A stretch of 64,000 nt of DNA from Selaginella moellendorffii. Taxonomy: Eukaryota; Plantae; Lycopodiophyta. Positions 15,126 to 57,029 of the stretch are shown piece after piece; the first letter of the stretch is position 1; the number at the start of each line of letters is the position of its first letter. The translations under genes were made by a program, and so were the position numbers. The notes below the pieces were generated by a model. The model did not search any database. It was not told the origin of the DNA and worked only from the letters and a program-made list of their open reading frames with translations. Where the stretch lies: contig NW_003314371.1 in NCBI RefSeq assembly GCF_000143415.4, positions 472,788 to 536,787 of the forward strand, in the 5' to 3' direction.

Positions 15126-17214
15126 GTTGAGTTTTTTGTGGATTCTTTCTAAAAGCTGATAAAGTTTCACTGAAATGAGATATGCATTTTTCCTTGTCGG
15201 CATCCATGTGCACAGGCTTCGCAAGCATCACGAGCGCAGCCGGGTTGCCAGGACTGAGCTTGAGAATCTCTTTTGCTGCTCTGTTTATCTGAGAAGAATC
15301 GGTAGAGCTCCTGAGCAGGGACATCCAGTCGAGCGCATCAGCCTCGTAAGGCATGCTCCACACGAGCTCCTCGGCCTCACGAAAGTATTTCGCTCGGGAA
15401 AGCAAGTCCACCATGCACGAGTAGTGCTGCTTGCTGGCTTCGAGGCCGTAGTCGAAGCTCATGGACGCAAAAAAAGACTTTCCAGAGTAGAGCTTGCCAT
15501 CGTGACTGCACGCAATGAGCACGGACGCAAAGCACGCGTCGTTGGGAGTATTCACCAAGTTGATCGAGCAAAAAATCCGCGGAGCTTCGCCCCAGCGGCC
15601 ACTATGGCAGTAGGCCGCGAGGAGAGATCCCCACGACACAACGTCGTCGCTCTCTGGCTTGCGATGGAACAGTCGACGAGCACTCGCGAGGTAGCCGAGC
15701 TGAGCGTAGGCCGCGAGCATCACGTTCCAGCACACAGTGTCCCGCTGGGGAATCACGTCGAAAACTTCTCTTGCCTCTCGGATCTGCCCGCTTCGAATGT
15801 AAGCCACGAGCAAGCAAGTCCACGAGACGATGTTTGGCTGCTCGCCACCGGGTATGGAATCCAGAACTCTCTTCGAATCGCGGGCATGGCCTTTGTTAGA
15901 GTACGCGGACAGAAGAGCTGTCCAGGAAACCAAGCTCCGCTCCGGCATCTCGGTGAAGGCCTTTCTAGCCTCCTCGATATGCCCTCTCCGGGCATACGCA
16001 TCCAGCCTCGTGTTCCATGAGACGAGGTCTCGCTCCGGCATCGCCGAAAACATGGCTTCCACGGCTTCCATCTCCACGTTTTCGCAGCGAGCAAGCGCCG
16101 CGACCATGGAGTTCCAGGACACAATGTTCCTCTGTGGCATTCGCCGGAACACGGCTCTTGCTCTCTCGATATGCCCGATCTGGGCATATCCACTCAGCAA
16201 GGAGTTCCAGGACACGAGATTACGCTCTATCATCTCATCAAATGTGAGCTCTAGAGCCTCAATAATTCCAGCCCGTGCATAGAGCGCTAGCATGCAATTG
16301 CCAGAGACTAGATCGTGGAAGGGCATTCGGGTGCTAAAGAAAATCTCAGCTTTGTGGTGGAGCGCGCTTTGGGAGTACGCTGCCAGCATAGAGTTCCAAG
16401 AGACGATGTCGCGCTCCTCCATTTCAGCGAATACACGAGCCGCCTTCTCGACTTCCCGTGCCTGAACAAATGCCGCAAGCAAAGAGTTCCACGAAACCAA
16501 ATCCCTCTCTGGCATCATCGTATAAAACATTATCACTGCTTGATCTATGCCTTTCGAGGAATACGCGGATAGAAGGCAATTCCACGAGAACATATTCCTT
16601 TCTGGCATTGTATCAAACACCTCCTTGGCCTCTTCCAAATGCCCAGACTGGGCAAGTGCCGAGACTATTAACGTTCCAGACACTAAGTCCCTTGATGGCA
16701 TTTCGTCATAGATTCTTTTGGCATCGAGAATCATCTTGCTTCCACAGTAAGCAGCTAGCATTGACGTCCATGAGACCATGTCCCTCATGGGCATCTCGTC
16801 AAATATTTTCTTTGCAGATTCAATGTGGCCGTTCTGGGCATAAGCAGAGAGCAGTGATGTCCACGACACCAAGTCATGCTCCGGACTTTGGACAAAAACC
16901 CTCCAAGCATCGACCAGTTGCCCATTCTTGAGGTAAGCATCCAGCATCAAGTACCAGGAGAAAGCATCTTTGGAATCGATGGAATCAAAAACTTGTCGTG
17001 CTAGAGCAGGACTTCCAACACGTCCGTACATGCGAATGAGCTTGTTGTGGATCCGAACGTCCACCGCAGTGTGGATTTTGCCAAGAGTGTGGCTACTGAT
17101 GTACTGGTGGATGTTCCTGGCATCGTCTAACCCATTGCAAGAATCGATGAGCTTGAAACACTCGTTCCTATTGAAGTTGCCACCCTTGATGAGCTCCACA
17201 CAAGTTCTACACAT
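15112..17214 (-). CDS. PLS-class pentatricopeptide repeat protein with E-domain-like C-terminus (intronless, 700 aa)
   Basis: Many 31-aa S-type repeats (..FDEMPERDLVSWNSLLxAY..), then FASVLIACSHDG and HYSCMVDLLSRA..EAEELV.SMPYE. Confidence 0.92.
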   Translation of the reverse strand: MCRTCVELIKGGNFNRNECFKLIDSCNGLDDARNIHQYISSHTLGKIHTAVDVRIHNKLIRMYGRVGSPALARQVFDSIDSKDAFSWYLMLDAYLKNGQLVDAWRVFVQSPEHDLVSWTSLLSAYAQNGHIESAKKIFDEMPMRDMVSWTSMLAAYCGSKMILDAKRIYDEMPSRDLVSGTLIVSALAQSGHLEEAKEVFDTMPERNMFSWNCLLSAYSSKGIDQAVIMFYTMMPERDLVSWNSLLAAFVQAREVEKAARVFAEMEERDIVSWNSMLAAYSQSALHHKAEIFFSTRMPFHDLVSGNCMLALYARAGIIEALELTFDEMIERNLVSWNSLLSGYAQIGHIERARAVFRRMPQRNIVSWNSMVAALARCENVEMEAVEAMFSAMPERDLVSWNTRLDAYARRGHIEEARKAFTEMPERSLVSWTALLSAYSNKGHARDSKRVLDSIPGGEQPNIVSWTCLLVAYIRSGQIREAREVFDVIPQRDTVCWNVMLAAYAQLGYLASARRLFHRKPESDDVVSWGSLLAAYCHSGRWGEAPRIFCSINLVNTPNDACFASVLIACSHDGKLYSGKSFFASMSFDYGLEASKQHYSCMVDLLSRAKYFREAEELVWSMPYEADALDWMSLLRSSTDSSQINRAAKEILKLSPGNPAALVMLAKPVHMDADKEKCISHFSETLSAFRKNPQKTQLSNC

Positions 17215-17272
17215 CAGAAAACTTGAAAGCTTTATTTCGGTTTGTGGATCTTATCATGCTTCATCGCAAGAT

Positions 17273-18355
17273 CTACAGAACAATCCAAATTCCATGACCA
17301 GACTCGCCATCATTCACTCCATAACGAGAACTAATGAAGTGGAACTTGAGGTTGTTTGGAACGCACAGCTTGAGGATCTGAAGGTAGCTCACAAGCTCGG
17401 CATTGCCAGAAGCCACAGCGTTCCTCATCACAACGTCGTAGTAATGCGTCACCTCGCGTTCCTTCTCCTGGATCATTGCACAGGTTCTGTCCACCGATTC
17501 CTGGAACGTGTTGATACTGGGATCCAAGAGCAACTGCAAGGACGCGATGCTTCTCAGTGGCTTTTTGGCGCGCAGCTCCGCGGGGAAGGAGATAACGTCG
17601 TTGACAAGGAGGACGTGATCGTTGATGGCGTTCTGGAGCGCCAGGTAGTCCCGCGACTCCAAATCGCTGTCTGGGAGCGCAATCTCCAGCGACATCTCGA
17701 TGAATGGGAAGCAGGGGAGGAGGAAGCAATCGAGCCTCCTGCGGGCCAAGTAGCTCTCGACCGTCGACGCCGATTGTGCTAGAGAAAGGACGCTCCGGTC
17801 CATGAAGGCAGCGTAGGCCTCCATCTGCGCGACCCAGTGCGCGTACACCCGGGGAGCCATGGATGATCGCAGGCGCGGAATGAGGTCCGCGCAGAACTCG
17901 AGCGATGGATGGACTGGATCGCGATGTGGGTGTGTCCCATGGAGGATGCCCTGGAAGGTCTCCAGGAACTCCTCCCGGGGGGCGCCACCGGGGGACTCGT
18001 CCTCGAGGAGATCATCCAGCATGGTTCCAAACCACGCGAACTTGCCGCAGAGGACGGCGCTTTCGGTGGATCCGCACAGCACGAGCATGCTCATGTAGAG
18101 CGGGATTCGCATGCGCTCCAGGGAGAGCTTTTGGGCATCGCTCATGCTGGGATTGATGAATGGGAATGCCCACTCGTTCGCGAGCTTGGCAACCAGCTTG
18201 TGGTCGGGATCCCAGGCGCTGGAGGGGATGGAGCAGCGAATGGGCGGCAAATAGAACCTCTTTAGCCCCAGGTGGTGTTCCATGGCGGGAATCTTCTCCA
18301 CAACAAATGCCATGACCATTAGGGGATCGTGGAGGAGGACATTTATAGTCACCAT
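17273..18355 (-). CDS. MTPSL: Microbial terpene synthase-like protein (MTPSL), copy 1, intact and intronless; true start probably a downstream ATG
   Basis: Single ~350-aa alpha-domain class I terpene synthase with DDLLED, NSE/DTE-like NDVISFPAE and C-terminal FHFISSRY. No plant-TPS beta/gamma domains. Confidence 0.9.
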   Translation of the reverse strand: MVTINVLLHDPLMVMAFVVEKIPAMEHHLGLKRFYLPPIRCSIPSSAWDPDHKLVAKLANEWAFPFINPSMSDAQKLSLERMRIPLYMSMLVLCGSTESAVLCGKFAWFGTMLDDLLEDESPGGAPREEFLETFQGILHGTHPHRDPVHPSLEFCADLIPRLRSSMAPRVYAHWVAQMEAYAAFMDRSVLSLAQSASTVESYLARRRLDCFLLPCFPFIEMSLEIALPDSDLESRDYLALQNAINDHVLLVNDVISFPAELRAKKPLRSIASLQLLLDPSINTFQESVDRTCAMIQEKEREVTHYYDVVMRNAVASGNAELVSYLQILKLCVPNNLKFHFISSRYGVNDGESGHGIWIVL

Positions 18356-18406
18356 GGCAAAGTTCGTTTCGAGAAATGCATAATGCAGTAGCTTTCACTT
18401 ACGTGG

Positions 18407-18568
18407 CTACCCCCTTGCCACGTTCATTCTTCGCTCTCTCTGGTACATGATGTTGTGACGCGCGCCAGGAAACCTGGTATGGGGTACCTTGTCCAGGATG
18501 AGCGCAAGAACAGCGTCCGGTAGGCTGTCAATGGTGGTGCCCTGAAGATGTGGACCTTGGACGTCCAT
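18407..18568 (-). pseudogene. F-box-like gene fragment inside a ~460 bp insertion (18360-18820) unique to duplicate copy 1
   Basis: Reverse strand reads MDVQGPHLQGTTIDSLPDAVLALILDKVP..*; LPDxxLxxIL is F-box-like. The flanks atggca|gacttt are contiguous in copy 2 (~24330). Confidence 0.5.
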
Positions 18569-18911
18569 CCGGTTAGAATTTCCCTAGCCATGATCCTTTA
18601 TCCTTTATCCTTTATAGCGTCGCTAAATATTAATTTGTCATGCTTAATCACGCCCAGCCCTAAATGGTTAACGATTAAATTTAAATGAGCTATAATTTAT
18701 AACTATAGCTTATACTTTTTGTGATCTTATTGAGAGAATTAACAATATACTAGAAAATCCAAATAAAAGGGGGTGCTGAATTGTGCATTCTACCCCACTG
18801 GACATTGCTAATGGAGTATCGACTTTGTACTGAATGCTTGAAAATTCTATCGCAGTGGCTGGAATATTGAAAGAAAAGTTTCATGCTCGTGTTTTCTCAC
18901 CCCTCATTGAG

Positions 18912-19720
18912 ATGGATCCCACACTTGGTGTCGTTGTAAGCTCTCTCCTCCTTTTTATCCTGGCCGTCGTGATAATCAGCTACAAATCCAGAGTGACTTC
19001 TCCACCAGGGCCATGGGGATTGCCCTTGATTGGCCACCTCCACTTGCTAGCGGGAATGCCATTCCACCAAGCGCTGCAATCCATGTCACACCATTGTGCG
19101 CCAGCCATGGGCAGGCGCTGGATTTGAGGAAGACCCTGTCGGTGTTCATATTCAACAGCATAACCGGCTCCATCATGAGCAAACGGTACCTCAGCCACGA
19201 GCAACTTCGTGCCTTGGTACTTGAGATGGCTTGACTGGAAGACTCCGGGATTGAGACGCCTTCATGCAAAGCTGGATAAGTTCTTGCAAATGGTTGTGGA
19301 AGAACACAAGAAGAGCACCCGAGAGAAGAAGGACTTCCTTGACATCCTGCTCAAGGCTTTCGGAGAGGAGGAAGCTTATGCAAAAGCTAATCTGTTGGTA
19401 CGTGCGTGAGGATGAAGGACAAGATAGTGCTTCTGATATTCACATTCTTTCTTTCAGGAATTGATGGTGGCAGGAACTGAAACTTCCGTCACTGGGACCG
19501 AGTGGCTCATGGCAGCTGATCCAGGAGCCCCGGATCCTGAAAAGAGCCCAGCCAGAGCCTCACAATGCCGTGAGCAACAGGCGGATGGTGCAAGAATCAG
19601 ACCTCTTCAAGCTCGGCTACCTCGACGCCATCATCAAGGAGTCACTCAGGCGCTACCCAATAGTCCCGATCCACATCCACGAGTGCCAAGGACAAGCTAC
19701 GACGTCCCAAAAGGAACCAT
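18912..19720 (+). pseudogene. Cytochrome P450 pseudogene, a deleted and truncated copy of the 24536-26110 gene
   Basis: PPGPWGLPLIGHLHLLA, VPWYLRWLDW, AGTETS and KESLRRYP remain, but with large internal deletions and frameshifts. The sequence switches into PRUNE at ~19721, before the heme motif. Confidence 0.88.
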
Positions 19721-21170
19721 CAGTGCAGCTCGATGTCGAGTCCCTTGTTTTCTTGGATGAAGTGTGTTGTTGCCATCCTTTTTTATTTCCTTGATTTTTT
19801 ATTCTTTTGTGTTGCCAGATTACCTTAACGTATTACCATCGATTTGGTAATCTCAGGCTTGTCTTAGTGGATCATAACAAGCTCGAACCCGTCCACGCGG
19901 TACTTAATTTCAAAATATTTTTATGTTTTGATTTTCAAGATTGTCGGGCAGAGCTTAAGTGATGTGATCGTAGAAACGCTTGAACACAGCATGGTACTAT
20001 AGATAATTAACTGTACTACGAAACTAATATTCTTCTCACTTTTACTTTCAGACTGAAAATAAGATCCCCCAGGTGCTTCTGGCTTGATCTTTGTTTTTAT
20101 TACAAAATGATTTCGCGATTTTTCTCTTTTCTATCATATGAAAGGTTGGCTCGTGCTGCACTTTGGTCGCGGAGAAATTCGCCTCCGAGGCTCCCAAGCT
20201 TTTACAAGAGGCTTGAGTCGACTTTTGGTAATGAGCTACAAATCCATGTCCGAGCTTTGTCTGATGGAAAAATGTGTATAGCTCGCTGGAATTTTGATCG
20301 ACACTTGCAACCTTGACTTGTCCATTGGCCAGTGCTCAAGCAGAGACGTCGCCATGGCAACTCTGCTTTTGAATGGGGCGGGACGCTATGATCGCAATGG
20401 TTTCTTCAAAATGCGTAAGTATGCTTTACTTCCGTGCTCCTCCTCTCATGATGTTTCACTTCGTCTCGTCAGTCCGGAAGAGAGTATCAGACTTGTCCGT
20501 GTTGAGCCCCAGGGAGATTCTCAACAAACAGATCGAAGTCTGGACTTCGGCAGCAGGTTTGCATATGTTTGTCTATGTACTTGTTTGATCGGTTTCGATT
20601 CGTTCATGGCCTGCAGGTAGCTCGGGAAGAATAGCAAGGATCGGGATGTGCTCCATGGGCATTGCTTTGAGCAGGTTCCTCACTGTTGAAACGGGAGTTT
20701 CCGACGAGTTCCTCCACCTCCAAAGTAAAAATTTCGGTTCTTCTTCTTTTGGTTTCAAGGATGACATGAAAACGTTCAACAGGATCCAAAAAACTTGACA
20801 TCTTGCTGCTTCTTACGAGCTACTATGACAAATCCGACAAGTTTAAGGTGCTGCTCTTTTTTTCTTTTTCTTTTTTTTTTTGCAAGTATAAATAATCTCC
20901 TTGTGACCAGCGCGAGCTTCTCATAGTCACTTAGGGCGAAGGACTGCTCCAAACACTAGTCGAATCTTACAACACCGCAGCACTGCAGCTCCACCCGATG
21001 GATTTCATAGGCAGGAAGAAAAAATTCTCTTTTTTTTGCACTAACACTTCTGTCATGCAGGATTGGGGCCATACACAAAGGCGTTTTCCCAAGGAAATAT
21101 CACCATTTCTGGAGCTCAAGTTCGTCACATCACTAAAGGCCTTTTCACGAGGCAGAGTTGAGTTTTTTGT
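19721..21170 (+). pseudogene. 5'-truncated duplicate of the PRUNE-like gene
   Basis: Near-identical to 13682-15140. It lacks the N-terminal exons and the DxD motif and carries small indels. Confidence 0.88.
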
Positions 21171-21171
21171 G

Positions 21172-23189
21172 AAGCGGAGCTTGGTTTCCTGGACAACTCT
21201 CCTGTCCGCGTACTCTAACAAAGGCCATGCCCGCGATTCGAAGAGAGTTCTGGATTCCATACCCGGTGGCGAGCAGCCAAACAGCGTCTTGTGGACTTGC
21301 TTGCTCGTGGCTTACATTCGAAGCGGGCAAATCCGAGAGGCAAAAGAAGTTTTCGACGTGATTCCCCAGCGAGACACCGTGTGCTGGAACGTGATGCTCG
21401 CGGCCTACGCTCAGCTCGGCTACCTCGCGAGTGCTCGTCGACTGTTCCATCGCAAGCCAGAGAGCGACGACGTTGTGTCGTGGGGATCTCTCCTCGCGGC
21501 CTACTGCCATAGTGGCCGCTGGGGCGAAGCTCCGCGGATTTTTTGCTCGATCAACTTGGTGAATACTCCCAACGACGCGTGCTTTGCGTCCGTGCTCATT
21601 GCGTGCAGTCACGATGGCAAGCTCTACTCTGGAAAGTCTTTTTTTGCGTCCATGAGCTTCGACTACGGGCTCAAAGCCAGCAAGCAGCACTACTCGTGCA
21701 TGGTGGACTTGCTTTCCTGAGCGAAATACTTTCGTGAGGCCGAGGAGCTCGTGTGGAGCATGCCTTACGAGGCTGATGCGCTCGACTGGATGTGCCTGCT
21801 CAGGAGCTCTACCGATTCTTCCCAGATAAACAGAGCAGCAAAAGAGATTCTCAAGCTCAGTCCTGGCAACCCGGCTGCGCTCGTGATGCTTGCGAAGCCT
21901 GTGCACATGGATGCCGACAAGGAAAAATGCATATCTCATTCCAGTGAAACTTTTATGAGCTTTTAACCTCCTCGATATGCCCTCTCCGGGCATACACATC
22001 AAGCCTCGTGTTCCAGGAGACGAGGATCGCCGTAAACATGGCTTCCACGGCTTCCATATCCACGTTTTCACAGCGACCAAGCGCCGCGACCATGGAGTTC
22101 CAGGACAAATGTTCCTCTGTGGCATTCGCCGGAACACGGCTCTTGCTTTCTCGATATGCCCGATCTGGGCATATCCACTCAACAAGGAGTTCCAGGACAC
22201 GAGATTACGCTCTATCATCTCATCAAATGTGACCTCTAGAGCCTCAATGATTCCAGCCCGTGCATAGAGCGCTAGCATGCAATTGCCAGAGACTAGATCG
22301 TGGAAGGGCATTCGAGTGCTAAAGAAAATCTCAGCTTTGTGGAGGTGCGCGCTTTGGGAGTACGCTGCCAGCATAGAGTTCCAAGAGAAGATGTCACGCT
22401 CCTCCATTTCAGCGAATACACGAGCCGCCTTCTCGACTTCCCGTGCCTGAACAAAGCAAAGAGTTCCACGAAACCAAATCCCTCTCTGGCATCATCGTAT
22501 AAAAATTTATCTCTGCTTGATCTATACCTTTCGAGGAATACGCGGATAGAAGGCAATTCCACGAGAACATATTCCTTTCTGGCATTGTATCAAATACATC
22601 CTTGGCCTCTTCCAAATGCCCACCCTGGGCAAGTGCCGAGACTATTAACGTTCCGGACACAATCCCTTGATGGCATTTCGTCGTAGATACTTTTGGCATC
22701 GAGAATCATCTTGCTTCTACAGTAAGCAGCTAGCATTGACGTCCATGAGACCATGTCCCTCATGGGCATCTCGTCAAATATTTTCTTTGCAAATTCAACC
22801 TGTCCGTTCTGGGCATAAGAAGAGAGCAGTGATGTCCACGACACCAAGTCATGCTCCAGACTTTGGACAAAAACCATCCAAGCATCGACTAGTTGCCCAT
22901 TCTTGAGGTAAGCATCCAGCATCAAGTACCAGGAGAAAGCATCTTTGGAATCGATGGAATCAAAAACTTTTCGCGCTAGAGCAGGACTTCCAACACGCCC
23001 GTCCATGCGAATGAGCTTGTTGTGGATCCGAACGTCCACCGCAGTGTGGACTTTGCCAAGAGTGTGGCCGCTGATGTGCTGGTGGATGTTCTTGGCATCG
23101 TCTAACCCATTGCAAGAATCGATGAGCTTGAAACACTCGTTCCTATTGAAGTTGCCACCCTTAATGAGCTCCACACAAGTTCTACACAT
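21172..23189 (-). pseudogene. PPR pseudogene (duplicate of 15112-17214) with frameshifts and an inverted 3' part (21172-21965 now on +)
   Basis: Fragment ORFs 22590-23189(-), 22409-22699(-) and 21145-22407(-). The C-terminal part reads on + (20998-21720, 21751-21966) with a premature TGA at 21718. Confidence 0.88.
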
Positions 23190-23247
23190 CAGAAAACTTG
23201 AAAGCTTTATTTCGGTTTGTGGATCTTATCATGCTTCATCGCAAGAT

Positions 23248-24294
23248 CTACAGAACAATCCAAATTCCATGACCAGACTCGCCATCATTCACTCCATAAC
23301 GAGAACTAATGAAGTGGAACTTGAGGTTGTTTGGAACGCACATCTTGAGGATCTCAAGGTAGCTCACAAGCTCGGCATTGCCAGAAGCCACAGCGTTCCT
23401 CATCACAACGTCGTAGTAATGCGTCACCTCGCGTTCCTTCTCCTGGATCATTGCACAGGTCCTGTCCACCGAGTCTTGGAACGTGTTGATGCTGGGATCC
23501 AAGAGCAACTGCAAGGACGCGATGCTTCTCAGTGGCTTTTTGGCGCGCAGCTCCGCGGGGAAGGAGATAACGTCGTTGACAAGGAGGACGTGATCGTTGA
23601 TGGCGTTCTGGAGCGCCAGGTAGTCCCGCGACTCCAAATCGCTGTCCGGGAGCGCAATCTCCAGCGACATCTCGATGAATGGGAAGCAGGGGAGGAGGAA
23701 GCAATCGAGCCTCCTGCGGGCCAAGTAGCTCTCGACCGTCGATGCCGATTGTGCTAGAGAAGGGACGCTCCGGTCCATGGAGGCAGCGTAGGCCTCCATC
23801 TGCGCGACCCAGTGCGCGTACACCCGGGGAGCCATGGATGATCGCAGGCGCGGAATGAGGTCGGCGCAGAACTCGAGCGATGGATGGACTGGATCGCGAT
23901 GTGGGTGCGTCCCGTGGAGGATGCCCTGGAAAGCCTCCAGGAACTCCTCCCGGGGGGCGCCACCGGGGGACTCGTCCTCGAGGAGATCATCCAGCATGGT
24001 TCCAAACCACGCGAACTTGCCGCAGAGGACGGCGCTCTCGGTGGATCCGCACGGCACGAGCATGCTCATGTAGAGCGGGATTCGCATGCGGTCCAGGGAG
24101 AGCTTTTGGGCATCGCTCATGCTGGGATTGATGAATGGGAATGCCCACTCGTTCGCGAGCTTGGCAACCAGCTTGTGGTCGGGATGCCAGGCGCTGGAGG
24201 GGATGGAGCAGCGAATGGGCGGCAAATAGAACCTCTTTAGCCCCAGGAGGTGTTCCATGGCGGGAATCTTCTCCACAACAAATGCCATGACCAT
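23248..24294 (-). CDS. MTPSL: Microbial terpene synthase-like protein (MTPSL), copy 2, intact and intronless
   Basis: 348-aa ORF with the same DDLLED / NDVISFPAE / SRY motifs. I counted 10 aa differences from copy 1. Confidence 0.9.
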   Translation of the reverse strand: MVMAFVVEKIPAMEHLLGLKRFYLPPIRCSIPSSAWHPDHKLVAKLANEWAFPFINPSMSDAQKLSLDRMRIPLYMSMLVPCGSTESAVLCGKFAWFGTMLDDLLEDESPGGAPREEFLEAFQGILHGTHPHRDPVHPSLEFCADLIPRLRSSMAPRVYAHWVAQMEAYAASMDRSVPSLAQSASTVESYLARRRLDCFLLPCFPFIEMSLEIALPDSDLESRDYLALQNAINDHVLLVNDVISFPAELRAKKPLRSIASLQLLLDPSINTFQDSVDRTCAMIQEKEREVTHYYDVVMRNAVASGNAELVSYLEILKMCVPNNLKFHFISSRYGVNDGESGHGIWIVL

Positions 24295-24535
24295 TAGGAG
24301 ATCGTGGAGGACATTTTATAGTCGCCATATGGCAGACTTTGGTGGGGTGATATCGAATGCTTGAAAATGCTATAGCAGTGGCTCGATTGTCATTGTACGT
24401 CCCAGACGAAACATAGGGCGGCGGGACTATTGAAAAATGAGTTTCATGCTCGTGTTTTCTCACCCCTCGTTGAAAAAACCGCAATCCATTGTATTTAAGA
24501 AGGTGGCAGTCCAGTGTTACTAGCAGAAAAGAGAG
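24295..24535. promoter_or_regulatory. Putative bidirectional promoter shared by MTPSL copy 2 and the P450
   Basis: 241 bp between divergent ORFs. TATAAAA on the - strand at 24314-24320 and TATTTAA on the + strand at 24492-24498. Confidence 0.5.
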
Positions 24536-26110
24536 ATGGATCTCACACTTAGTGTCGTTGTAAGCTCTCTCCTCCTCCTTTTTATCCTGGCCGTCGTGAT
24601 AATCAGCTACAAATCCAGAGTGACTTCTCCACCAGGGCCATGGGGATTGCCCTTGATTGGCCACCTCCACTTGCTAGCGAGAATGCCCCTCCACCGAGCG
24701 CTGCAATCCATGTCACAAAAGCACGGCCCCATTGTGTCCTTGAGCCTGGGAATGAGGCCAGCGATTCTCATATCAGCGCCAGCTCTGGCAAGAGAGCTCT
24801 TTACCTCGCAGGATGTGAATTTTCCATCCAAGCCATATACGAGTGTCTCAGAGCACATAGACTACAACTTTAGAAGCATCGGGACTGCCCCTTATGGCGA
24901 GTACTACAGCAGCATCCGGAAGCTGTGCCTGACGGAGCTCTTCACCGCCAGGAATATCGATTCGTTTTCATGGATTCGAAGAGAAGAGCTCTCGCATCTT
25001 TTGAGTGCAATTCTCAGCAGGGCCAGCCATGGGCAGGCGCTGGATTTGAGGAAGACCCTGTCGGTGTTCTCATTCAACAGCATAACCGGCGCCCTCATGA
25101 GCAAACGGTACCTCAGCCACGAGCATACCGGTGCGGCTAGCTCAAAGGAGGCCATGGAGTTCAAGAATTGGTTAATCGAAGTGTTGCAGCGTGTTATGGA
25201 GCCCTGTTTGAGCAACTTCGTGCCTTGGTACTTGAGATGGCTTGACTGGAAGACTCCTGGATTGAGACGCCTTCATGCAAAGGTGGATAAGTTCTTGCAA
25301 ATGGTTGTGGAAGAACACAAGAAGAGCACCCGAGAGCAGAAGGACTTCCTTGACATCCTGCTCAAGGCTTTCGGAGAGGAGGAAGCTTATGCAAAAGCTA
25401 ATCTGTTGGTACGTGTGTGAGGATGAAGAACAAGATAGTGCTTCTGATATTCATATTCTTTCTTTCAGGACTTGATGGTGGCAGGAACTGAAACTTCCGT
25501 CACTGGGACCGAGTGGCTTATGGCAGCAGTGATCCAGGAGCCCCGGATCCTGAAAAAAGCCCAGCAAGAGCTTCACGATGCCGTGGGCAACAGGCGGATG
25601 GTGCAAGAATCAGACCTCTCCAAGCTCGGCTACCTCGACGCCATCATCAAGGAGTCACTCAGGCGCTACCCAATAGTCCCGATCTACATCCGCGAGTGCC
25701 AAGGCCAAGCGTCAAAACTCGGGGGCTACGACGTCCCAAAAGGAACCATCGTGATCGTCAACTCGTGGGCGCTGGGAATGGACCCCGTGGTGTGGGAGAA
25801 TCCCACACAATTCTTGCCGGAACGCTTCCTTGCGAGGTCCATCGACATCAAAGGCCAGGACTTTGAACTCCTTCCATTTGGATCTGGGCGGAGGAGATGC
25901 CCAGGGATGCCCTTGGGCCTAAGAACCATGAAGCTGCTCGTGGCAAATCTCATACATGGCTTTGACTGGAGTGTGGAGCCTGGGAAGATCCAATCCATGG
26001 AGGATTGCTTCAAATCTACTTGCATCATGAAGCATCCATTGCAGCTAGTGGTTACTCCAAGGCTGCCGAAAGATGCCTACACTACCCAAATACATGATTT
26101 CTTCATATAA
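24536..26110 (+). CDS. Cytochrome P450, CYP71 clan (A-type), intact, one intron 25409-25468
   Basis: N-terminal membrane anchor, PPGPWGLPLIGHL hinge, I-helix AGTETS, KESLR (ExxR), PERF, heme FGSGRRRCPG. One phase-0 intron before the I-helix, as in CYP71-clan genes. Confidence 0.93.
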
Positions 26111-26289
26111 TAAGTTTTAATCTAGTAGTATATTAATATTAGTGTAGTGGAATTTTGGTAACTAATATTAGTGTAATAAATTTTAGTAATTGTTAGATTG
26201 ATTTGAACCTGCATATAAGCTAAGGTTTCTGGGCTAATTGATATATATATTTTTTATATTCCATTTTCATATCCCTAAGGAGTGTACCA

Positions 26290-29200
26290 TTGGTTCAATC
26301 ATTTCACGATGATTACCACATATCATTCTTAGGATAATGCTCAACATTTACGTGAGTTTCTCATGTGTCTCCAAAGGATGGTTGTGGAGTGGTACAATGG
26401 TTTGAGCACAGCCATTCGTGGGGATTGGAGTGTTCTCCCAAAAATCTTCAAATGCACATTTAGATATACTAACGATTGTGATGATGCCTTCCAACAATTG
26501 TGTTGTCTTTGTCAAGGGCTATCTGAGTCTGTGATGCAATTTAGCATTAGTTTTTGAAGCCTCTTGCTTCATGCAAAGTCAAATATATTAGAGCGGATTA
26601 ACTTAGAAATGTTATGGCTAGCACTTCATTAAGATTTTGTTGGACTTGTGCATGCACTTGCTCCAACCACCCTTGACGATGCTCTTCGCCTGGCACAATG
26701 TTATAAAACATTGCTTTTTCCACTTCTCGCTGCATGTCCTTTAGCTCCACTTCCTATGGGCAATGGTTCTATTTCAATAAAGGTTAATGTTGCTACTACT
26801 CAAGTCCAAGGACAAGTGCGAGGATGTGGTCGTGGCCGTGATGTTTGTTGCTAAGTGTGTGATGAAGTTGGTCACACTTATTGGTGTTGTCGGTGTTTTC
26901 CAAATTGGTGACTTCCATTTCCTGAATGGAGACTTTAGTGTCAATAATGTCCTATTGGTGTTACTATAGTGGAAGGTTTGGACACCAAGATGCATCTGGG
27001 AAACGAGGAGTCACCTGAGTAGTGGAAGAACCTTGCGTGAATAAGTTAATAACCCCTCCATCTTTCTTGCAAGAGTATCATCAAGGGGTTCACTTGGCAC
27101 CAGTTCATCTAGTGTTTACTTTCTAAGCTCGTTTTTATAACTAGAGGTCTTCTATTATTCTCTCCATATTAGTTGATACAGGTTTGAGTTTATCTTCTAT
27201 TGTTTGACCTGTTGCCACACGTTGCCATCTACATTTGCGTTGTGCAGCAGAGTCAGTTTTCATTCTTTATGGCAACGGCCGTACATATACATATGCACGG
27301 GATAAGGTGGATTTAGTTGTGGGTATGGGCAATTTCGAATTTGGGTTGCAGTCATTGTGGGTGGTGTCGAATCAAACTTTTGACTTCATCATTGGTATAG
27401 ATTGGTTGTAATATAATCATGCTAAGTGTGACTTTGAGGCTTCTCCCCCTTGTCTCATACTTCTTTATATTTCATTTATTCCTCTCGCTTTTGTACCTTT
27501 ACATCCCTTTGCTTCTACCTCTACTTCAATTACTTTTGTCTCCCTATTACTTCTTTCTATGTTTCCGTTTTGTTCCACTTTTCCCTTTTCCGATCCCTTT
27601 GACAATCTTTGTATTGCAGCGGTTGATCAACTCATAAAGGAGTATGCTGATCTTTTTGAATTTGACCTATCATCTGGGGCTAAGATTGCCACATGTCATC
27701 CGATTCTAACCAGGGATGCTTGTCTAATCAAAGTTCTTGTTTGTTATTAGTCACTTAAAGAGATCAAGATTTTGTGTACAAACGTCAAGGAGATGTTGGA
27801 AAAGGGTATTATTCTAAAGTCACGGAGTCCTTAGGCATGTGAACCTCATCTGGTGATAAAACTAGAAGGGAGTTTTCGTTTCTAAATCAACTATCACATT
27901 AAATGAAGTGACAATCCCGGATGTGTACCCTCTTCTTCACATTGTTGATTTTTTGGATCGTTTGGGAGAAGTCGTTGGTTCACCAAGCTAGATCTTGCTT
28001 CTGGGTATTGGCAAGTACTGATGGCTGAAGAAAATATTCCTAAGACTACTTTTTGTACATTGTTTGGTTTGTATGAGTTCTTGGTGATGTTGTTTAGTTT
28101 GAAAAATGCCTTAGCAACTTTTGAGGGGATGATGGATGAGGTTCTTTACGATATACCAGAGGTGACTGCTAACTTCATTAATGATATTTTGATCCACTCG
28201 AAGGGGATATAAGAAAAACACATCCATGATGTTTGTAAAGTGTTGGATTGGCTATGGGACATTGGTTTAATGCTGAAAAGGTTGAAGTGCGTGTTTGGGT
28301 CCAAAGACATGACTTATCTTGGGTACCATATTTCTCGTAAGGGTTTGCAAGTTGATCCTGACAAACTTGTGCTTTGAGACACAAATCCCTAAACCCCAAA
28401 GTGGAGCCAAAAGGGTGCCATGTGGTAGTGGCCGAAGCAAAAGCCAAACAAGCATAATACATTTGGACTAAAAGCTCCGACTTGAAAAGTCGAGAGTAGG
28501 AATGGAACTCCCAACAAAAGGCTCGAGGAATGAACTTGAAGCAAGCAATAAGTGAATCTTTAGAAAAAGGACACAAGAGGACCAACATATGATACGTGGA
28601 AGTGTCAAGATGGACCCGAGAGGGAGTCTAAAGAGTCCAAGATAGACCCAAGATGGAGTCCAAGATAGACCTGAGATGGACCCAAGATGGAGTCTGAGAT
28701 GGAACCGAGACTGAGATTGAGATTGAGATCGAGACCGAGACCGAGTCTGAGACCGAGACCAAAACCAAGTTCGAGACCAAGTCCGAGACCGAGACCGAGA
28801 CCAAGTCCGCGTCTGAGTCCGAGTTTGAGTCCGAGTCTGAGTGTGAGTGCGAATACTAATATAGGCTGTTGGGTGAAAGCCCAAAGCAATCGGTGCAAGG
28901 GGTTCTAAAAGTATAGTAGGGAGAGTGTGGGGGTTGGACCCCAGTGGAGCTAGTTTGGCCAGGAAAGGCCAATGTGACTCAGGAAGGCTATGCCCACATG
29001 TTGGGTGATGATATATCCATTGAGGAGTTCAAGGGTATAGTGAATACAGACTGACAAATGGGGTAGTTTGGTGAAGTGTTCAGAAGCCAACTCTAGTTCC
29101 CCCAGAAGATCAAATGGTCAATGCTCTCAATCCAAGCGTGGGTGGCACTACTTACTTGGATACCTAACATGGCTCAATAAAACCTTGTTCTAGCCCTATG

Positions 29201-30550
29201 GCTAGAGCACCCAAAGGTAGAAAATGGGGAGAGTACCCATGAGGCTCACGTAGGGCCACGGTGTTCTAAAATATTGTCCCAAAGTCCTAGACTGTGGAAA
29301 GGAAAAGGAACAATCCTCTAGGGTAGTGACAAAGGATACGGTCATATTATGAGGAAGTCCCATAGGACAATGGGACTTAATAGTCGGGCTTGTGGGCCTT
29401 GACCTAGTGGCAATGTTAGCAAGCATGGTCATAGACAAAAAGAAACTTGATAGGGACTGGAAAAGGGATATTGAGGAAGGCTGTTCCCCATGTCTGTGGG
29501 CATCCTAAAGATGCTAAAGAGTGGATCTGGAATGATTGCCTAGGAACAGATGACTTAGTCTTTGAGAGACAGGATTGTGATGTAGGTGGTGTTAAATCAC
29601 TACTGTGACAAAAGTGAATGGGTATAGCGTTAGCATAACGGGTTGATATATCGATAATACCTTTGGGTGTCAGTCATGGGATCGGACACATGGAGCACTT
29701 GGACCAAGTGCAAAGTTGACTTATATGGATGCCATTCTCAGGGCAAGTTCGGAAGAAGACTTATCGAGGTTGTGAGTGATACTCCTCCAAGTGGTCGGAG
29801 GTGTGATTGAGTGACTAAAATAGAATAAAAAATTTAGTCACTTACATGTGGCTATTGTAAAGTTTCATACTCTAAAGTGTGTGAATGATGTGTAATACTT
29901 TCTAAACAAGGTGTAGTATCTCAGTTGTTTTATGGATCATCTTTTTGATTGCACTCCACCGTTGCAAGCATTGCTAAAGTCATCAATGTCATCTTTCATT
30001 TGGTCTACAGACTGTGAGCGGGCATTTATGAATCTCAAAGAGCTATTGATGACTCCTCCGGTTTTGGCATATCCTAACTACGCTCAACTGTTCATTTTGC
30101 ACGTGGATGCTTCTGATATTGGTCTTGGAGGTGTGTTGATGCAAGAGAGTCTGAGTGTGCTTGGTCAGCGCTATCCCATTGCATACATCAACCGTATATT
30201 ACAACCAGCGGAGGTGAACTCCTCCATGATAAAGGAGTGTTTAGTAGTACTGTAGGGTTTTGAGAAACTTGATGCATATCTATATAATTCTCGGACATTA
30301 CTAAAAAGTGATCATGTTGCCATTACTTCATTATTAAAGCTGAAGAATTTAGTTGGTCAAGCTTCAGATATATGATTTTGATGTTGTTCATCACCCGGGA
30401 AGTTCTATGGCTGATGCTGACGCCATTTCTTGAGCTCCTCTTCCTTCTTCACTCTCTTCTCATGTTTCTGACGAGCCTATTGTTTTAGCATTTATGGATT
30501 TTCTAGACAAGGATTCTGTGCCATCGGCAGTTGTTGTATTTGACGTTTAG
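26290..30550 (+). mobile_element. Degenerate Ty3/gypsy retrotransposon internal region (gag-PR-RT-RNaseH); boundaries approximate
   Basis: Zn knuckle C*VCDEVGHTYWCC (~26850), protease ILVDTG (~27170), RT DLASGYWQV..KTTFCTLFGLYEF..FINDILI (~28000-28200), RNaseH FILHVDASDIGLGGVL (~30100). Many stops. Confidence 0.85.
28373..29846 (+). mobile_element. Solo LTR (family A) inserted into the gypsy RT
   Basis: Homologous to 41949-43588 in reverse and ends ..cttaCA. 5-bp target duplication tgtgc/tgtgg. The RT reading DPDKL|VAIVKF rejoins across it. Confidence 0.85.
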
Positions 30551-33385
30551 TGTCCACAAAGCCACACCAAGTATCCAAGTAGGTAGTGCCACCCACACTT
30601 GGACTAGGAGCATTTTCTCGGGGGAACTAGAGCCGGCTCTTGAACACTTCACCAAACTACCCTGCTTGTCAGTCCGTGTTCACTCTAGTCTTGGACTTCC
30701 TAGTGGGCAACTCATCACCCAACACTGGGTACAGCCTTTCTGGGCCAAATTGGCCTTTCCTGGCCAAACAAGCTCGACTATAGTCCTCCCCTTTACTATA
30801 CTTTTGGAGCTCACCAAACCCCTAGGGTCTGGGAGATGAACGCTTTGGGCTTTCACCCTCTCGGACTCGAACTCGGACTCAGACTCGGACTCGGACTTGG
30901 ACTTGGACTCAGACTCGGGCTCGGTCTTGGCCTCAGCCTCGGTCCCGGTCTCGTTCTCGACCTCAGACTCCATCTCGGGTCCTTCTCGGACTCCATCTCG
31001 GATTCCATCTCGGGTCCATCTCGGACTCCATCTCGGACTCCGTCTCGGTCCATCTTGGACTCCATCTCGGGTCCATCTCGGGTCCATCTCGGACTCCATC
31101 TCGGGTCCATCTCGGACTCCATCTCAGTCCATCTCGGACTCCATCTCAGACACTTCCATGTGTCATGTGTTGGTCCTTTTGGGTCCCTTTTTAGAGCCTC
31201 ACTTATTGCTCACTTTGTGCTCATTCCTCGAGCACTTTGTTGGGAGTTCCATTCCCGCTCTCGACTTTTCAAGTTAGAGCTTTTGGTCCAAACGTGTTAC
31301 GCTCGTTTGGCTTTCGCTTTGGCCACTACCATATGGCACCTTTCCGACTCCACTTTGGGCCTAGGGATTTTGTGTCTCACAACTCCACTACCCATAGACA
31401 AAGTTCGATGTCCTCATCGAACAGTAAACCCTTTTATAAAATAACACTCGCATGTATTACCATTTCCATCCTTGGCACCCAGCCAATATTTGTTTATGGT
31501 TTGACACCGAAGGCTCACCATGCCTTGTCCATCCTCTAAGGAGCATAGTCTCTCCAATATAGAGACTCACTCGACCACCTGGGGTGTTTTGATTCTTTTT
31601 ATTGGTTCAATTCTTGCTAAACCCGTTAGAGACACCCTCTCTGACTCAATTCCACAACTCATTCTAGAGTAGTCTCAGATTCCATTAACATAACCTTTGC
31701 ACTTTGGAACTTTTAATTTTGACTTCTTAGAGTCAATTTCCTAGCTATCTCCAACACCTTACGTTGCATATGGTGCAACTCCACTTCCCCATCCTAAGAA
31801 GTTCTTTACTTGAGGGCACCATCATCCTCTCTTCGATATCGTGCCACCTTTGGCACTAAGTTCCAGTTATTATAATTTGTGCTAGAGCTGCCCACGACTC
31901 TATCATTTGGCTACTTTACCGCTCCCTACCTTGGAGCTTCCACTTTTGCCAAATCGGAGCAATTGGGAATCCATTTTTGGAAACACATTGCCTTTCCCAC
32001 AATTCGTTAGCACCCAACACATTAATGCTCTTGGCCTAACTTTGTGTTTTGGATTCTTTCCCAGAATTCCTATAGCTCTTTACTTAGCCACTAGTCTTTC
32101 ACTCCTATCTTTGATTGCTGCACCTAATAATATCGGATCACTACCTCCATTCTTGAGGTATCCTTTCGGTTCCATAGTAAAAACTTTGCTTTGCTAAGTC
32201 TAGAGGGTGTTCACCCCTAGTATATCTTTTTAGGATTTTCTATTGTGGGCTCTATCCTTGGCCCAACTTGTGACATTCCCATGGGTCTCTTATAGAGACT
32301 ACTTTCCTCAGACTCACTATACCATTGCATGGACACAACTTATTTCCCTTAGGTGCTCTTCCCATTTGGTCATCTTGACTAAGCCACACCATCTTAAACA
32401 GTTTAAATTAACACTTTGAACCAAGAACTTCATTCTTTAACCAATTAAGGACCTTGTCCTTATTTAGCCACAAGATCACCTAATGATCTCACCTTGGCAC
32501 CTTAACAGAGTTGCCAATAGGTACTTGGTTTTTTAGACCTTCAAGTTGTTGATTATGACCCCGGGGGCATCCCCCACACTTGGTGGTGCACCCAAGCCAA
32601 CCCATCCGGCCAAGGGTCCATAGCCACTGAGACTAGGTGTCCCCATCTCATTCACCACATCCTTGGTGTCCTTCGTACCAAGGTGTTCAAGTTAGATATG
32701 CTGAGCCACACTAAGCAATATAACTGTGCATCACGACTTCGGAGTTTGCATCTTTCCCGTGATCCCAACTATAGTTGTTTACTACAATTACATTAACCCA
32801 TTTATTGCGTCAAACACTCATCTGGATCACATCCTCAACTCTCTGAGGAAACCCTCATACTATTCCCAAGATCCCAAAGTCGTTCCCTTACTGACCCTTT
32901 TCCATCCACCACATCGTGCACAAGTTCATGCAAGAACTCAAGTGGAGAGCTATGTGCTCTCGACATGCTACTCCTCAAGGATAGGTCCATGCCTAGGACT
33001 TTCCAATTCAAATACAAGTGGTGATATACTTGGCCACCAATAAGAGTTAGACTAAGGAACAGCTCTGATACTGTAGCGCACCTTATCTCTTTCCCCTTAA
33101 GCCAACTGGAAAAGGGGCAATTGCTTGATGAGAGAGCCCTTAGTGGCTATTTTATCCCCATTTATCCCCCAAGGTTCCAAGGATCCACGGTGATAGTATA
33201 TCCAAATCTCATCCCATGATCACATGCGCTACACTCACCCCCCCTTCAGAGATGTCAATGTCCTCATTGACTATTGACTAGCAACCCCTACTGAGCCAAG
33301 GGGAACCAACACCTCCATTTCCGCACTCAATCTACCAATCCTTCCATTGTGTAGACCAGCTATTCCATGTGAGGCAATTAGTCAT

Positions 33386-36300
33386 CAAAGCAACCAACAA
33401 TCACTTGTCTTGCCTTTCACAAGACCCAAACACTAACTCATGTCATTGAGTCATATACTTGTCCAACATGAACGTGATACCTTCGGTATAAGATAAAAGT
33501 TCATTGACAAGCACAAACTAAATAACCACTCGAATCCAACGCAACTGCAATAAGCTCACTAATGCATTTAGCCACTAGCTCTGAGCATGCCTTGAAGAGG
33601 CTAGCTATGCATGACCAACACTTAGCCGAAACTAAAGCGAAGACCATGAGATGGACTTATATCGGTACACAACCTCCTCATAGACAAAGCTACAGTATGG
33701 GTACCAACATCTCAAACTCAAACAACTAAGTTGGACATCACTATCCTCAGCCAAGGCGCAAAGCCACCAAGACCAAATCAAGATCAGTGAGAGCTAACTA
33801 CTCTCATAGAGTCTTACGAAATGCAAGGTGCAACCTGCCACCAAGCATAATGCTACAAAAGAAAGGCACAAGGGTCACCTTTCTAGAAAAGTGCAACGGC
33901 CACTTTTCTACACTAACTCCAGACTCTATCCAACTCAATTGCTTTAGCCCCAAAAGTTAGCATCCCTTTTGGGCTACATCATACAAACTACCTACTAAGA
34001 TCTAAGCCAACCGAAGTCAACTCCAACCCCTTTACTAGTTTGTATTGGCTTATGAAAACGGAATGGTTTTCGAGCAAAGTGACAACAGATCAGCCATTGG
34101 AAAAGTCTAAGAAAATTTGTGGAAAATTTTCCATTCTAGAGAAAGAATAACTCTCAGTCCAAGAATGCAAACTTTCAAGACTCAACCAACTTCCTCCTAC
34201 TAATAACTTCACATAGTTCACCTCAACACAAATTCTCATGACCCATAGTATGCTTAAGCCTCGAACATCTCTTTTTGCCCATACTTCTGACATCCAACAC
34301 CGACATCCGCAAAATGCAAAATGAACATCTAAAGCTTGATCACAAAGACCACATCTTTGGATATCCACATTGCACTAACACTCTTCTTCAACCACCTTCA
34401 AGATCCAATGTGAAGCTAAAACACTAACAAGAAAAAAAATGACATGGAAAATCAAGCTCTAAGAAAAATCCTCGTCACTTGAAATAATAATGCCACTTCT
34501 ACTAACACAAGTGTTAGTAATGTCAATGCCTCAACCTCACACCTTCTCTATCCAACAATCTACTCCAAGTGCTAACGGATCAACCAACAAGCCATAGCAA
34601 GTAAATGCTATAACTTGTTCCAACACCTTATGGGCAAACCCTCAAGGAACAAGGAACCAACTTAAGCTTAGCATAATGGTCCACCATTGAGAATCTAGTC
34701 AAAGCTACTACAATGCTACTACGTGCAAGTAGATTAGCTTCTCCATCAACCACTTTGGGGTTGATCATCGTTTAACCAAGCAACTTCGTAAACACATTGC
34801 TCATTATCACATGGATATGATATGGAAATCACAATGACTTGATCATCCATTGAGCAACACCACGAGTAATGTCTATGTCATTACTTCAAAAGTTTATGTG
34901 AGTATCAAGTGCAAACTCGATTCGACAAAATGCAACATAAATGCCACACTCTACCGATAGAGATTTACAACACTCAGCACCACTAACTTTTGTTCACAAC
35001 ATGGACAAACTCATGCCACTCTCTTTTCGACCAAACTCAATACTAATCCAACACCGAGCTACTCAAGGAGCAATAGCAAGGTTCCCCGGAAAAGAATTAA
35101 GCATTGTAACCCAAGTCTTTCTAATAGCAAGCTTAGACAAAATGGTTTACCACTTCACCGCTATCCATCCCACAACTCACCATTTGTAAGACCATCATCT
35201 CCAAAATGCATCAAGGTAGGGACTCTTGATTGCATGATGTGAACACGAGCAATAAGTTAACACCTCGTTGCAAATCATCTCTCCAAGACGAGAAGATGAT
35301 TTACGTGTTTGATCCTCCATCCCCGATGACTCTCTTTTCGGTTTCATCTTTGACCAAACCTCAAGCTTGCTTGTGTAAGGCACATTAGCAACTCAAGGTT
35401 ACACTTTGAGTTGGCAGGATCAATGTTAGCCTATCAGTGGTTCCATGAGTTGTTCCATGTACTGTGGGTAAAAGCAAACCTTCCCTGAGTTTGCTATGAG
35501 TGGCAAATAGGCTGGTCCGTAGCTGTTTAGCACGGCACTAGTGGATCCTTCCTAGGCATGATTACAAGTGAATCAATCAAGACTGTAGGGATGAATCTAT
35601 TGATTCAAGTAATCATTGCCGTGCTCTCTCATAAACTTTTCTTGGATTGGACTGAAGGCAGTGCGGAAGCAAGCTTGAGGTTTGGTCAAAGATGAAACCG
35701 AAAAGAGAGTCATCGGGGATGGAGGATCAAACACGTAAAAAAACTTAATCCCTCTTATGAGCCCAAACTCATTCTCAAAGAATATGGTACAAAAGGTAAC
35801 CAAAACCATACCTTAGGAACAAAGGTGAACCTCTTTGCACCAAACGTGTACCCACTCGGATCATCGTTTTCATCTCTGCGTATGCAACGAGACTAGTTGC
35901 CTAATCTCATTGAATAGTACTCGCTGAGAGTCATTCTCTGATACCAAATGTATAGTAGGGATAGTTGCTATCGGGGAACCTTGCTATTGCTCCTTGAGTA
36001 GCTCGGTGTTGGATTAGTGTTGAGTTTGGTCGAAAAGAGAGTGGCATGAGTTTGTCCATGTTGTGAACAAAAGTTAGTGGTGCTGAGTGTTGTAAATCTC
36101 TATCGGTAGAGTGTGGCATTTATGTTGCATTTTGTCGAATCGAGTTTGCACTTGATACTCACATAAACTTTTGAAGTAATGACATAGACATTACTCGTGG
36201 TGTTGCTCAATGGATGATCAAGTCATTGTGATTTCCATATCATATCCATGTGATAATGAGCAATGTGTTTACGAAGTTGCTTGGTTAAACGATGATCAAC

Positions 36301-37674: not shown

Positions 37675-38121
37675 CAACTAGTGATTGCTTGTAGACTTTG
37701 TCAAGGGCTTTTGACATTTGCTTCATTCAATGAAGATTTATCAATGATGGGCTTGCCTTACCAAATGGGGTTGCGGAGGATCGTGTCGTTAAACTTACAT
37801 GGGTTTTCCATGTTGGCATGTCGACTCTACCTCTGTTGATATCATTTGGTTGCGTTTAGTTCATAGTGTTGGATTTCATTGAGTCTTGGACGTGGTGATT
37901 CACTCCTTGAGGAAGTGTTATCTGTAACTGAGTTTTGCTAAAGGATTGGTCTCGGTTAATAACTAAAGTATCTTCGACCTTGGTTAGCTTAGTTGCTAGA
38001 GAGCTTTGAGTGGTGATTCACTCGTGCTTTCTTCTAGCTTTGTTCTAGTGTTGATGGCATTGAGGTGATGCTTTGTCATTGATATTATTGATGTTGAGAT
38101 TCAGGTGAGATGATATATCTA

Positions 38122-38338
38122 TCCTTAGGATTGATATTGAGTTTCATTGCTCTCGATGAAGATAGTGTTGATGATTTGGCTATAGCTTTGTGTTATTAGC
38201 ATTCGTGCATTTGCTAGTTAGCAACTGTGTCCTTAGGATTGATATTGAGTTTCATTGCTCTCGATGAAGATAGTGTTGATGATTTGGCTATAGCTTTGTG
38301 TTATTAGCATTCGTGCATTTGCTAGTTAGCAACTGTGT
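38122..38338. repeat. 108-bp direct tandem duplication
   Basis: tccttaggattgatattgag...gcaactgtg occurs twice in tandem. Confidence 0.9.
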
Positions 38339-38536
38339 TGACGTTCAAATGAACTGAGTGGCAAGTTTGAGTTAGTTGTGTTCTAGATGAGATTATTTAG
38401 TAGAGGGTTGAGCTTCGACTTTTTCCTTGAAAAGTGATTCAGTCGTGAACTATGCTAACTCTACAAGTGGAAGAGTTAGTGATCAATATTGAAGTGATCA
38501 AATCCTTGTTAGATTTGAGTTGGGATATATTGATCC

Positions 38537-38731
38537 TGTAAGCTCCTGAGTTTGGACTTCCCGGGAGGTCACCCAACCCAGTACTATTCAAACCCAAGGA
38601 CGCTTAACTCCAACTATCCCAAGACCCTTAACCGATTGGAAAAGGGGGTGCACTCTTGTTCATGGGCCCTTTCCCTCTATATTTGAACCCCAACGGATCG
38701 TCTCTCAAGTCGTTCCCTTTGGTTGCTTATA
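38537..38731 (-). mobile_element. Cassandra-type TRIM solo LTR carrying a 5S rRNA internal promoter segment (38554-38609)
   Basis: 195 bp, ends TGTAAGC...GCTTATA, TSD GATCC. The reverse strand has AGTTAAGCGTCCTTGGGTTTGAATAGTACTGGGTTGGGTGACCTCCCGGGAAGTCC, matching the A-box to C-box region of plant 5S rRNA. Confidence 0.85.
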
Positions 38732-57000: not shown

Positions 57001-57029
57001 TTTTGATTATTTACATCACCTACCATATG

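Follow-up and report, generated by a model that had tools for sequence, protein, structure and literature searches.

Does a microbial-type terpene synthase gene that lies head to head with a cytochrome P450 gene in the lycophyte Selaginella moellendorffii form a biosynthetic module with its neighbour, or did the two genes come to adjoin by accident? The question is raised by a 64,000-nt stretch of the two-haplotype assembly of this species (the window, to which all window coordinates refer). In this stretch, the terpene synthase gene (MTPSL) occupies positions 23248-24294 of the minus strand and the P450 gene occupies positions 24536-26110 of the plus strand, with 241 bp between them. The gene pair and its divergent layout are real, expressed and older than the duplications at the locus. 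We put the probability that the two genes constitute a functional two-step terpenoid module, in which the MTPSL supplies a scaffold and the P450 CYP797B17 oxidises it, at roughly 45%. The pair is a reasonable but unproven candidate for a scaffold-plus-oxidation unit and a lead rather than a demonstrated cluster. It consists of the following features.

23248-24294, minus strand: MTPSL-B, intact and intronless (PF19086, motifs, AlphaFold2 (AF2) fold, RNA contigs)
24295-24535, between the genes: divergent spacer of 241 bp with two back-to-back TATA-like boxes (sequence)
24536-25408, plus strand: CYP797B17 exon 1, 291 codons, with the membrane anchor and the PPGP hinge (PF00067; 100% identical to XP_024520217.1)
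25409-25468, plus strand: CYP797B17 intron, 60 nt, GT..AG, phase 0 (sequence; skipped in contigs of RNA runs X1 and X7)
25469-26110, plus strand: CYP797B17 exon 2, with AGTETS, ESLR, PERF and FGSGRRRCPG, stop codon included (PF00067, E 3.2e-56; translation)

The first-pass annotation had described an intact, intronless MTPSL and an intact P450 diverging from a 241-bp spacer with a TATA-like motif facing each gene. It had identified the enzymes as a microbial-type terpene synthase and a CYP71-clan P450. Domains, fold and relatives bear out both identities, the synthase being a single alpha-domain class I enzyme, and the gene structures stand as described. The MTPSL-B open reading frame (ORF) encodes 348 residues, 2 more than the annotated model (346 residues, start at 24288), and its sole Pfam match, PF19086, extends over the full profile (E 1.4e-22). 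All catalytic signatures are present (DDLLED at 101-106, NDVISFPAE at 240-248, the sensor Arg194, and RY at 332-333), and they align with those of S. moellendorffii MTPSL13 and MTPSL30 and of Pseudomonas and Streptomyces synthases. The AF2 model (pLDDT 83.7, pTM 0.87) predicts the fold of a single alpha-domain class I terpene synthase, and its best Foldseek matches are fungal and bacterial class I synthases (sesquiterpene and diterpene) that align over the whole length with a TM score of ~0.8. The best-matching sequences with solved structures are Streptomyces VenA (1.5e-15) and then caryolan-1-ol synthase.

An exhaustive HMMER search with MTPSL-B returned 180 relatives. The ten top-listed relatives that were looked up are all S. 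moellendorffii MTPSLs with at most 41% identity, and bacterial enzymes follow; the relatives identified outside the S. moellendorffii paralogues are bacterial, with two from ferns or fern allies. MTPSL-B is therefore placed in a small and divergent MTPSL subclade, because its relatives are few and none of the ten exceeds 41% identity. Judged by sequence, it is closer to bacterial and fungal synthases than to typical plant terpene synthases (TPS). In the alignment, the N-terminus begins level with those of the bacterial enzymes, which leaves no room for a transit peptide, and the enzyme is probably cytosolic. The gene is a resident of the plant nuclear genome and not a contaminant: its neighbours are a PPR gene and an intron-bearing plant P450, it occurs on two haplotype scaffolds and it is transcribed.

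CYP797B17 comprises two exons that encode a 504-residue product identical to RefSeq XP_024520217.1, and UniProt gives the name CYP797B17 to the original annotation model of the gene. PF00067 is matched on both exons, and the P450 signatures listed above are all found in the translation. The matches outside Selaginella are CYP81, CYP93 and CYP736, and the closest solved structures are CYP76AH1 and CYP76AH3, followed by CYP93C and CYP73A. These relationships support the placement of CYP797B17 in the CYP71 clan, in the lycophyte-specific family CYP797, on which a literature search found no paper. In the tree, the MTPSL-adjacent P450s CYP797B1, CYP797B2 and CYP797B17 form a separate subclade of CYP797B on a long stem.

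Both genes are transcribed. RNA-assembly contigs of four runs, including X1, X5, X6 and X7, were placed on positions 23000-26400 at 99% likeness; only contigs were used, so the expression level cannot be quantified. Three studies contribute RNA assemblies with the MTPSL transcript, and two of these assemblies include the P450 with the predicted splicing. In run X1, a gapless 1072-nt contig (23192-24263) covers nearly the whole MTPSL, which establishes that the gene is unspliced, and spliced P450 contigs are present as well. Much of the MTPSL is also covered in run X7, from a different study, together with the spliced P450, and in run X6, where P450 sequence occurs in unspliced form only. In contigs of X1 and X7, precisely the 60 nt of the predicted intron are missing, with GT..AG ends, so these assemblies represent RNA and confirm the modelled splicing of the P450. 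Positions 24264-24621, which include the whole spacer, are covered by no contig in X1, X6 and X7; this gap argues against DNA carry-over and fits two separate divergent transcripts. No contig of run X5 was placed at 99% likeness although its word index matches, and this result carries no weight as an absence. The two genes thus co-occur in the same RNA assemblies in three studies at the level of contigs, and word shares suggest partial discordance in other runs.

The contigs also distinguish the gene copies. Each MTPSL contig differs from MTPSL-B at 0-2 positions; over the longest contig (1072 nt), up to 17-20 mismatches separate it from the other copies. In the P450 contigs, letters of CYP797B17 are mixed with those of the near-identical CYP797B1 of the other haplotype, and a match to the truncated CYP797B2 never occurs. 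The expressed copies are therefore the intact ones (MTPSL-B and CYP797B17/B1). RNA contigs carry the CYP797B1 letter at positions 24802, 25000, 25070, 25831 and 25837, and within one contig the CYP797B17 letters are found at 9 of the 12 positions that separate the two genes. This pattern suggests either expression of the two intact, near-identical P450s or their merging by the assembler. At the other end of the pair, an RNA contig ends 56 nt past the MTPSL stop codon in the window; the RefSeq model of the MTPSL on the other haplotype (fetched locus L001, 10001-11572) has 443 residues and runs beyond the stop of the 348-residue ORF.

Within the spacer, TATAAAA (24314-24320) is read on the minus strand and TATTTAA (24492-24498) on the plus strand, each facing its own gene, with ~171 bp between them. 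At the window-wide density of TATA-like motifs, 0.56 per kb, 0.14 would be expected in 241 bp and 2 are observed, for a motif set that was picked after the motifs had been seen. The divergent orientation, the spacer of less than 1 kb and the core promoter elements on both sides give the locus the layout of a bidirectional gene pair. The MTPSL and the P450 are also adjacent, non-homologous biosynthetic genes, as is expected of a cluster.

The age of the arrangement can be read from its copies. The pair lies in the second of two tandem units, and each unit carries a PPR gene, an MTPSL and the 5' part of a P450.

13681-25745, both units: two tandem 6.04-kb units, 13681-19720 and 19721-~25745, 95-98% identical
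15112-17214, minus strand: PPR gene of unit A, intact, 700 residues, within the duplicated block
17273-18319, minus strand: MTPSL-A, intact paralogue in unit A, ORF extendable to 18355 (97% amino acid identity to MTPSL-B)
18912-19720, plus strand: CYP797B16, P450 pseudogene of unit A, cut at the junction, with internal deletions and frameshifts (sequence comparison)
21127-23189, minus strand: PPR remnant of unit B, broken; 21173-21965 inverted relative to unit A

The first-pass annotation had claimed the same arrangement for the other duplicate. Its layout is confirmed, since unit A holds an MTPSL (17273-18319, minus strand) and a P450 (18912-19720, plus strand) in divergent orientation, and the P450 proves to be a truncated pseudogene. 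The further claim that the arrangement predates the duplication stands, as both units hold the divergent pair. The unit boundary falls inside exon 2 of the P450, so CYP797B16 was truncated at birth, without the PERF and haem-binding motifs. Deletions of 284, 89, 63, 16 and 2 nt followed and removed, among other sequence, its TATA-like box. Unit A thus retains an intact PPR gene and an intact MTPSL; in unit B, the PPR gene is broken and the MTPSL and the P450 are intact. The break in the unit B PPR gene is caused by a ~790-nt segment (21173-21965) that is inverted relative to 15150-15941, to which it is 98% identical. In copy A, the MTPSL-A and CYP797B16 start codons (the former at 18319) are separated by 592 bp. 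In this spacer (18320-18911), ~400 additional bases have no counterpart in copy B or in pair A' of the other haplotype, and pair B' keeps only fragments of them. An F-box fragment was considered as the origin of these bases and was dropped, since the short ORF has no Pfam match.

Two further copies of the pair are found on scaffold GL377576.1, where the syntenic region is ~97% identical to the window in both flanks and most likely represents the other haplotype of the assembly. Pair A' consists of a PPR gene, a frameshifted MTPSL (indels of -21, +5, -10, +1, -10 and +1) and an intact, 500-residue CYP797B1. In pair B', ~11 kb beyond A', the MTPSL is intact and lies head to head with CYP797B2 across 305 bp; a premature stop at codon ~459 deprives CYP797B2 of ~41 C-terminal residues. 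Both TATA-like boxes are kept in the three copies that retain the P450 5' end, and the P450-side box is deleted in copy A. Pairwise dN/dS ratios, which rest on few substitutions, are 0.29-0.50 for the MTPSL copies (0.29 for A versus B) and 0.32-0.43 for the P450 copies, pointing to mild purifying selection on both genes. Each haplotype retains at least one intact MTPSL and at least one intact CYP797B1/17.

How the pair might work can be proposed from these features, which lend partial support to the co-regulated scaffold-plus-oxidation unit put forward in the first-pass annotation. We infer shared regulation, farnesyl diphosphate (FPP) as the substrate and action of the P450 on the MTPSL product. 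Two back-to-back core promoters ~171 bp apart would leave the genes with one short shared upstream region, and both would tend to switch on together. The MTPSL would act on a prenyl diphosphate of the cytosol, most likely FPP, and ionise it via its DDxxE/D and NSE metal sites to form a terpene, presumably sesquiterpene, scaffold. CYP797B17, anchored in the endoplasmic reticulum (ER), may then hydroxylate or further oxidise this scaffold. The pair was duplicated as one block on at least two occasions, after which redundant partners decayed. On the broader evolutionary scale, the lycophyte may have independently coupled a horizontally acquired microbial-type synthase to the CYP797B1/B2/B17 subclade via a bidirectional promoter, a case of convergent TPS-P450 clustering that we propose tentatively and at less than even odds.

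The remainder of the window provides the context in which the adjacency has to be judged. Apart from the MTPSL and P450 genes, the Pfam-recognised genes encode ATG13, an EamA transporter, PPR proteins and a TPR protein, and an Rfam scan of the whole window at gathering thresholds found no RNA family. Two further P450 sequences lie downstream.

56464-56912, plus strand: P450 fragment (pseudogene piece) upstream of CYP797B20 (tblastn)
58422-59956, plus strand: CYP797B20, intact, intron 59280-59326, without an adjoining MTPSL (54-61% amino acid identity to CYP797B17)

A second PPR gene (54452-56155, minus strand), 33% identical to the PPR protein of unit A, is divergent from the P450 fragment and CYP797B20 (56464-59956, plus strand). 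The layout at 54452-59956 resembles that of the duplicated units, but no MTPSL lies in between. CYP797B17 is separated from the TPR gene (43839-45197) by a ~17-kb stretch of low GC content that is rich in repeats (26100-43600) and holds a 1703-nt inverted repeat with 99% complementarity (33386-35088 and 35972-37674). On the other haplotype, the corresponding P450 is only ~2.5 kb from that TPR gene.

Several of these observations weigh against a functional module and favour incidental adjacency, in which an MTPSL came to lie among tandemly evolving CYP797B genes in a dynamic region rich in transposable elements, segmental duplication carried along whichever genes were present (PPR, MTPSL and part of a P450), the two enzymes belong to unrelated pathways and the short spacer reflects a compact genome. 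We consider this a serious possibility that falls somewhat short of an even chance. The MTPSL lies among CYP797B genes (CYP797B16, CYP797B17, the fragment and CYP797B20 in the window, and more on both haplotype scaffolds), so that a P450 neighbour is likelier by position alone. The duplicated block also holds an unrelated PPR gene, and its boundary cuts the P450. Among the four copies of the pair, only one is fully intact; in the other three, one partner is dead (CYP797B16, the MTPSL of A' and CYP797B2), and the partners decayed independently. The retention of intact genes on each haplotype does not discriminate between the explanations, because the unrelated PPR gene shows the same pattern of one copy kept. 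A common operational definition of a biosynthetic cluster asks for at least three enzyme classes, and the MTPSL and the P450 are the only biosynthetic ones among the Pfam-recognised genes of the window.

The spacer and the expression data also temper the case for a module. Divergent spacers range from 38 to 737 bp across nine fetched loci, which makes a 241-bp spacer ordinary for a compact genome. No special constraint on the spacer is visible, as its divergence between B and A' (5%) exceeds the synonymous divergence of the P450 (dS 0.019). Only 20-26 nt separate the MTPSL-side TATA box from the first ATG, which renders the start site and the start codon of the MTPSL uncertain. Word shares hint that some runs are P450-rich and MTPSL-poor and that others show the reverse. 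What speaks for more than accident is that both genes are transcribed in the same samples, that the TATA-like boxes are conserved on both sides, that the MTPSL-adjacent P450s form a distinct subclade, and that a second MTPSL-P450 adjacency is found at the nearest MTPSL paralogue.

This second adjacency is itself ambiguous. Five of the six other sampled MTPSL loci have no P450 within 10 kb. At the sixth, a P450 lies 313 bp downstream of the nearest paralogue, XP_024534415.1 (41% identity), in tail-to-tail orientation. That P450 (L003, 11393-12590, minus strand) is dead, being frameshifted and without the haem Cys loop; it belongs to the CYP71 clan and is placed weakly, on a long branch, near CYP797. 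In the second haplotype (L009, 11360-12431, minus strand), gene models show the same P450 remnant, and L003 is the locus that was read at the sequence level. If P450s account for ~1% of genes, as we assume, ~0.1 P450 neighbours would be expected among the six loci against the one observed, with a probability of at least one of ~0.1. Genome-wide, roughly 0.5-0.8 chance MTPSL-P450 adjacencies would be expected. An MTPSL and a CYP797-like gene also share one 1.44-Mb scaffold.

An explanation that we regard as improbable is that the genes share a promoter and respond to the same cue, such as defence or tissue identity, with the P450 acting on another substrate class. The ~171 bp between the core promoter motifs and the co-occurrence of the genes in RNA assemblies would fit this explanation. 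NCBI labels the relatives flavonoid 3'-monooxygenase-like, and the automatic names of CYP797B relatives point to phenylpropanoid-type families such as CYP75, CYP81, CYP93 and CYP736. However, such names are similarity labels and not tests, and CYP797 has no functional literature; the closest solved structures are diterpene oxidases, mostly reflecting which plant P450s were crystallised. A decaying relic, in which the locus is eroding and the intact copy is the last survivor without a current role, would account for the dead partners in three of the four pair copies and for the P450 of the nearest paralogue being dead in both haplotypes, but it is very unlikely given that the intact copies are transcribed and spliced, that dN/dS is well below 1 and that all catalytic motifs are intact.

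If the MTPSL-CYP797B17 module proves functional, plants would gain their first example of a biosynthetic MTPSL-P450 pair. Should the P450 oxidise the product of the MTPSL, scaffold-plus-oxidation pairing would have arisen in lycophytes independently of the TPS/CYP clusters of seed plants, and native plant P450 metabolism would have taken in a synthase family acquired by horizontal transfer. Such activity would provide a first function for the CYP797 family and extend the mini-cluster and bidirectional-promoter finding made for an MTPSL in Marchantia to vascular plants. If the P450 does not act on this product, the locus serves as a caution that, where a two-haplotype assembly is compact and duplicated, adjacency in the vicinity of P450 genes is easily mistaken for a cluster.

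The first-pass annotation knew of no characterised MTPSL-P450 cluster, and the literature search likewise found no published one in plants. Related systems differ from the Selaginella pair in distinct respects. In angiosperms, TPS genes and CYP71-clan P450s form pairs and clusters, such as the momilactone and phytocassane clusters of rice and the casbene synthase-CYP726A genes of castor. As in these clusters, a class I terpene synthase adjoins a CYP71-clan P450 and the block is tandemly duplicated. The synthase described here is, in contrast, a single alpha-domain microbial-type enzyme (PF19086) rather than a beta-alpha or gamma-beta-alpha plant TPS, the P450 is from the lycophyte-specific family CYP797, and only two enzyme classes are involved. 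Bacteria and fungi also combine terpene synthases with P450s in operons and clusters, for example the epi-isozizaene synthase and CYP170A1 of Streptomyces. The fold and the motifs of MTPSL-B match those of such synthases, VenA being the nearest solved one, and both settings follow the principle of placing an oxidase beside a synthase. The P450 partner, however, is native to the plant: it belongs to the CYP71 clan, is ER-anchored and has a spliceosomal intron, so the pairing arose in the plant lineage rather than arriving with the synthase.

Three systems outside the seed plants are closer in one respect or another. In Dictyostelium discoideum, DdTPS8 and CYP521A1 are divergent and share a bidirectional promoter, and the P450 oxidises the product of the synthase (PMC6524965). 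The divergent arrangement of a microbial-type terpene synthase and a P450 is common to both loci; the host is an amoeba, the P450 belongs to an unrelated clan, and the function demonstrated there is inferred in Selaginella. HsMTPSL1 of Huperzia serrata is a characterised diterpene synthase that is co-expressed with CYP781 P450s of the CYP71-clan type (PMC13118282). Here too, lycophyte-specific P450s are proposed as tailoring enzymes for a lycophyte MTPSL, but the link is co-expression only, without genomic adjacency, and involves a different P450 family. In Marchantia polymorpha, MpMTPSL2 and MpCPT5 share a bidirectional promoter; according to the authors, no mini-cluster of this type had previously been described in plants (10.64898/2026.07.16.738752). 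The MpMTPSL2 partner is an upstream prenyltransferase, a neryl diphosphate (NPP) synthase, and not a downstream P450, and knockouts, reporters and H3K27me3 data furnish the proof for that pair, whereas the Selaginella pair is known from its sequence and RNA contigs. What the two loci have in common is an MTPSL of a non-seed plant that lies head to head with a partner gene over a short shared promoter region.

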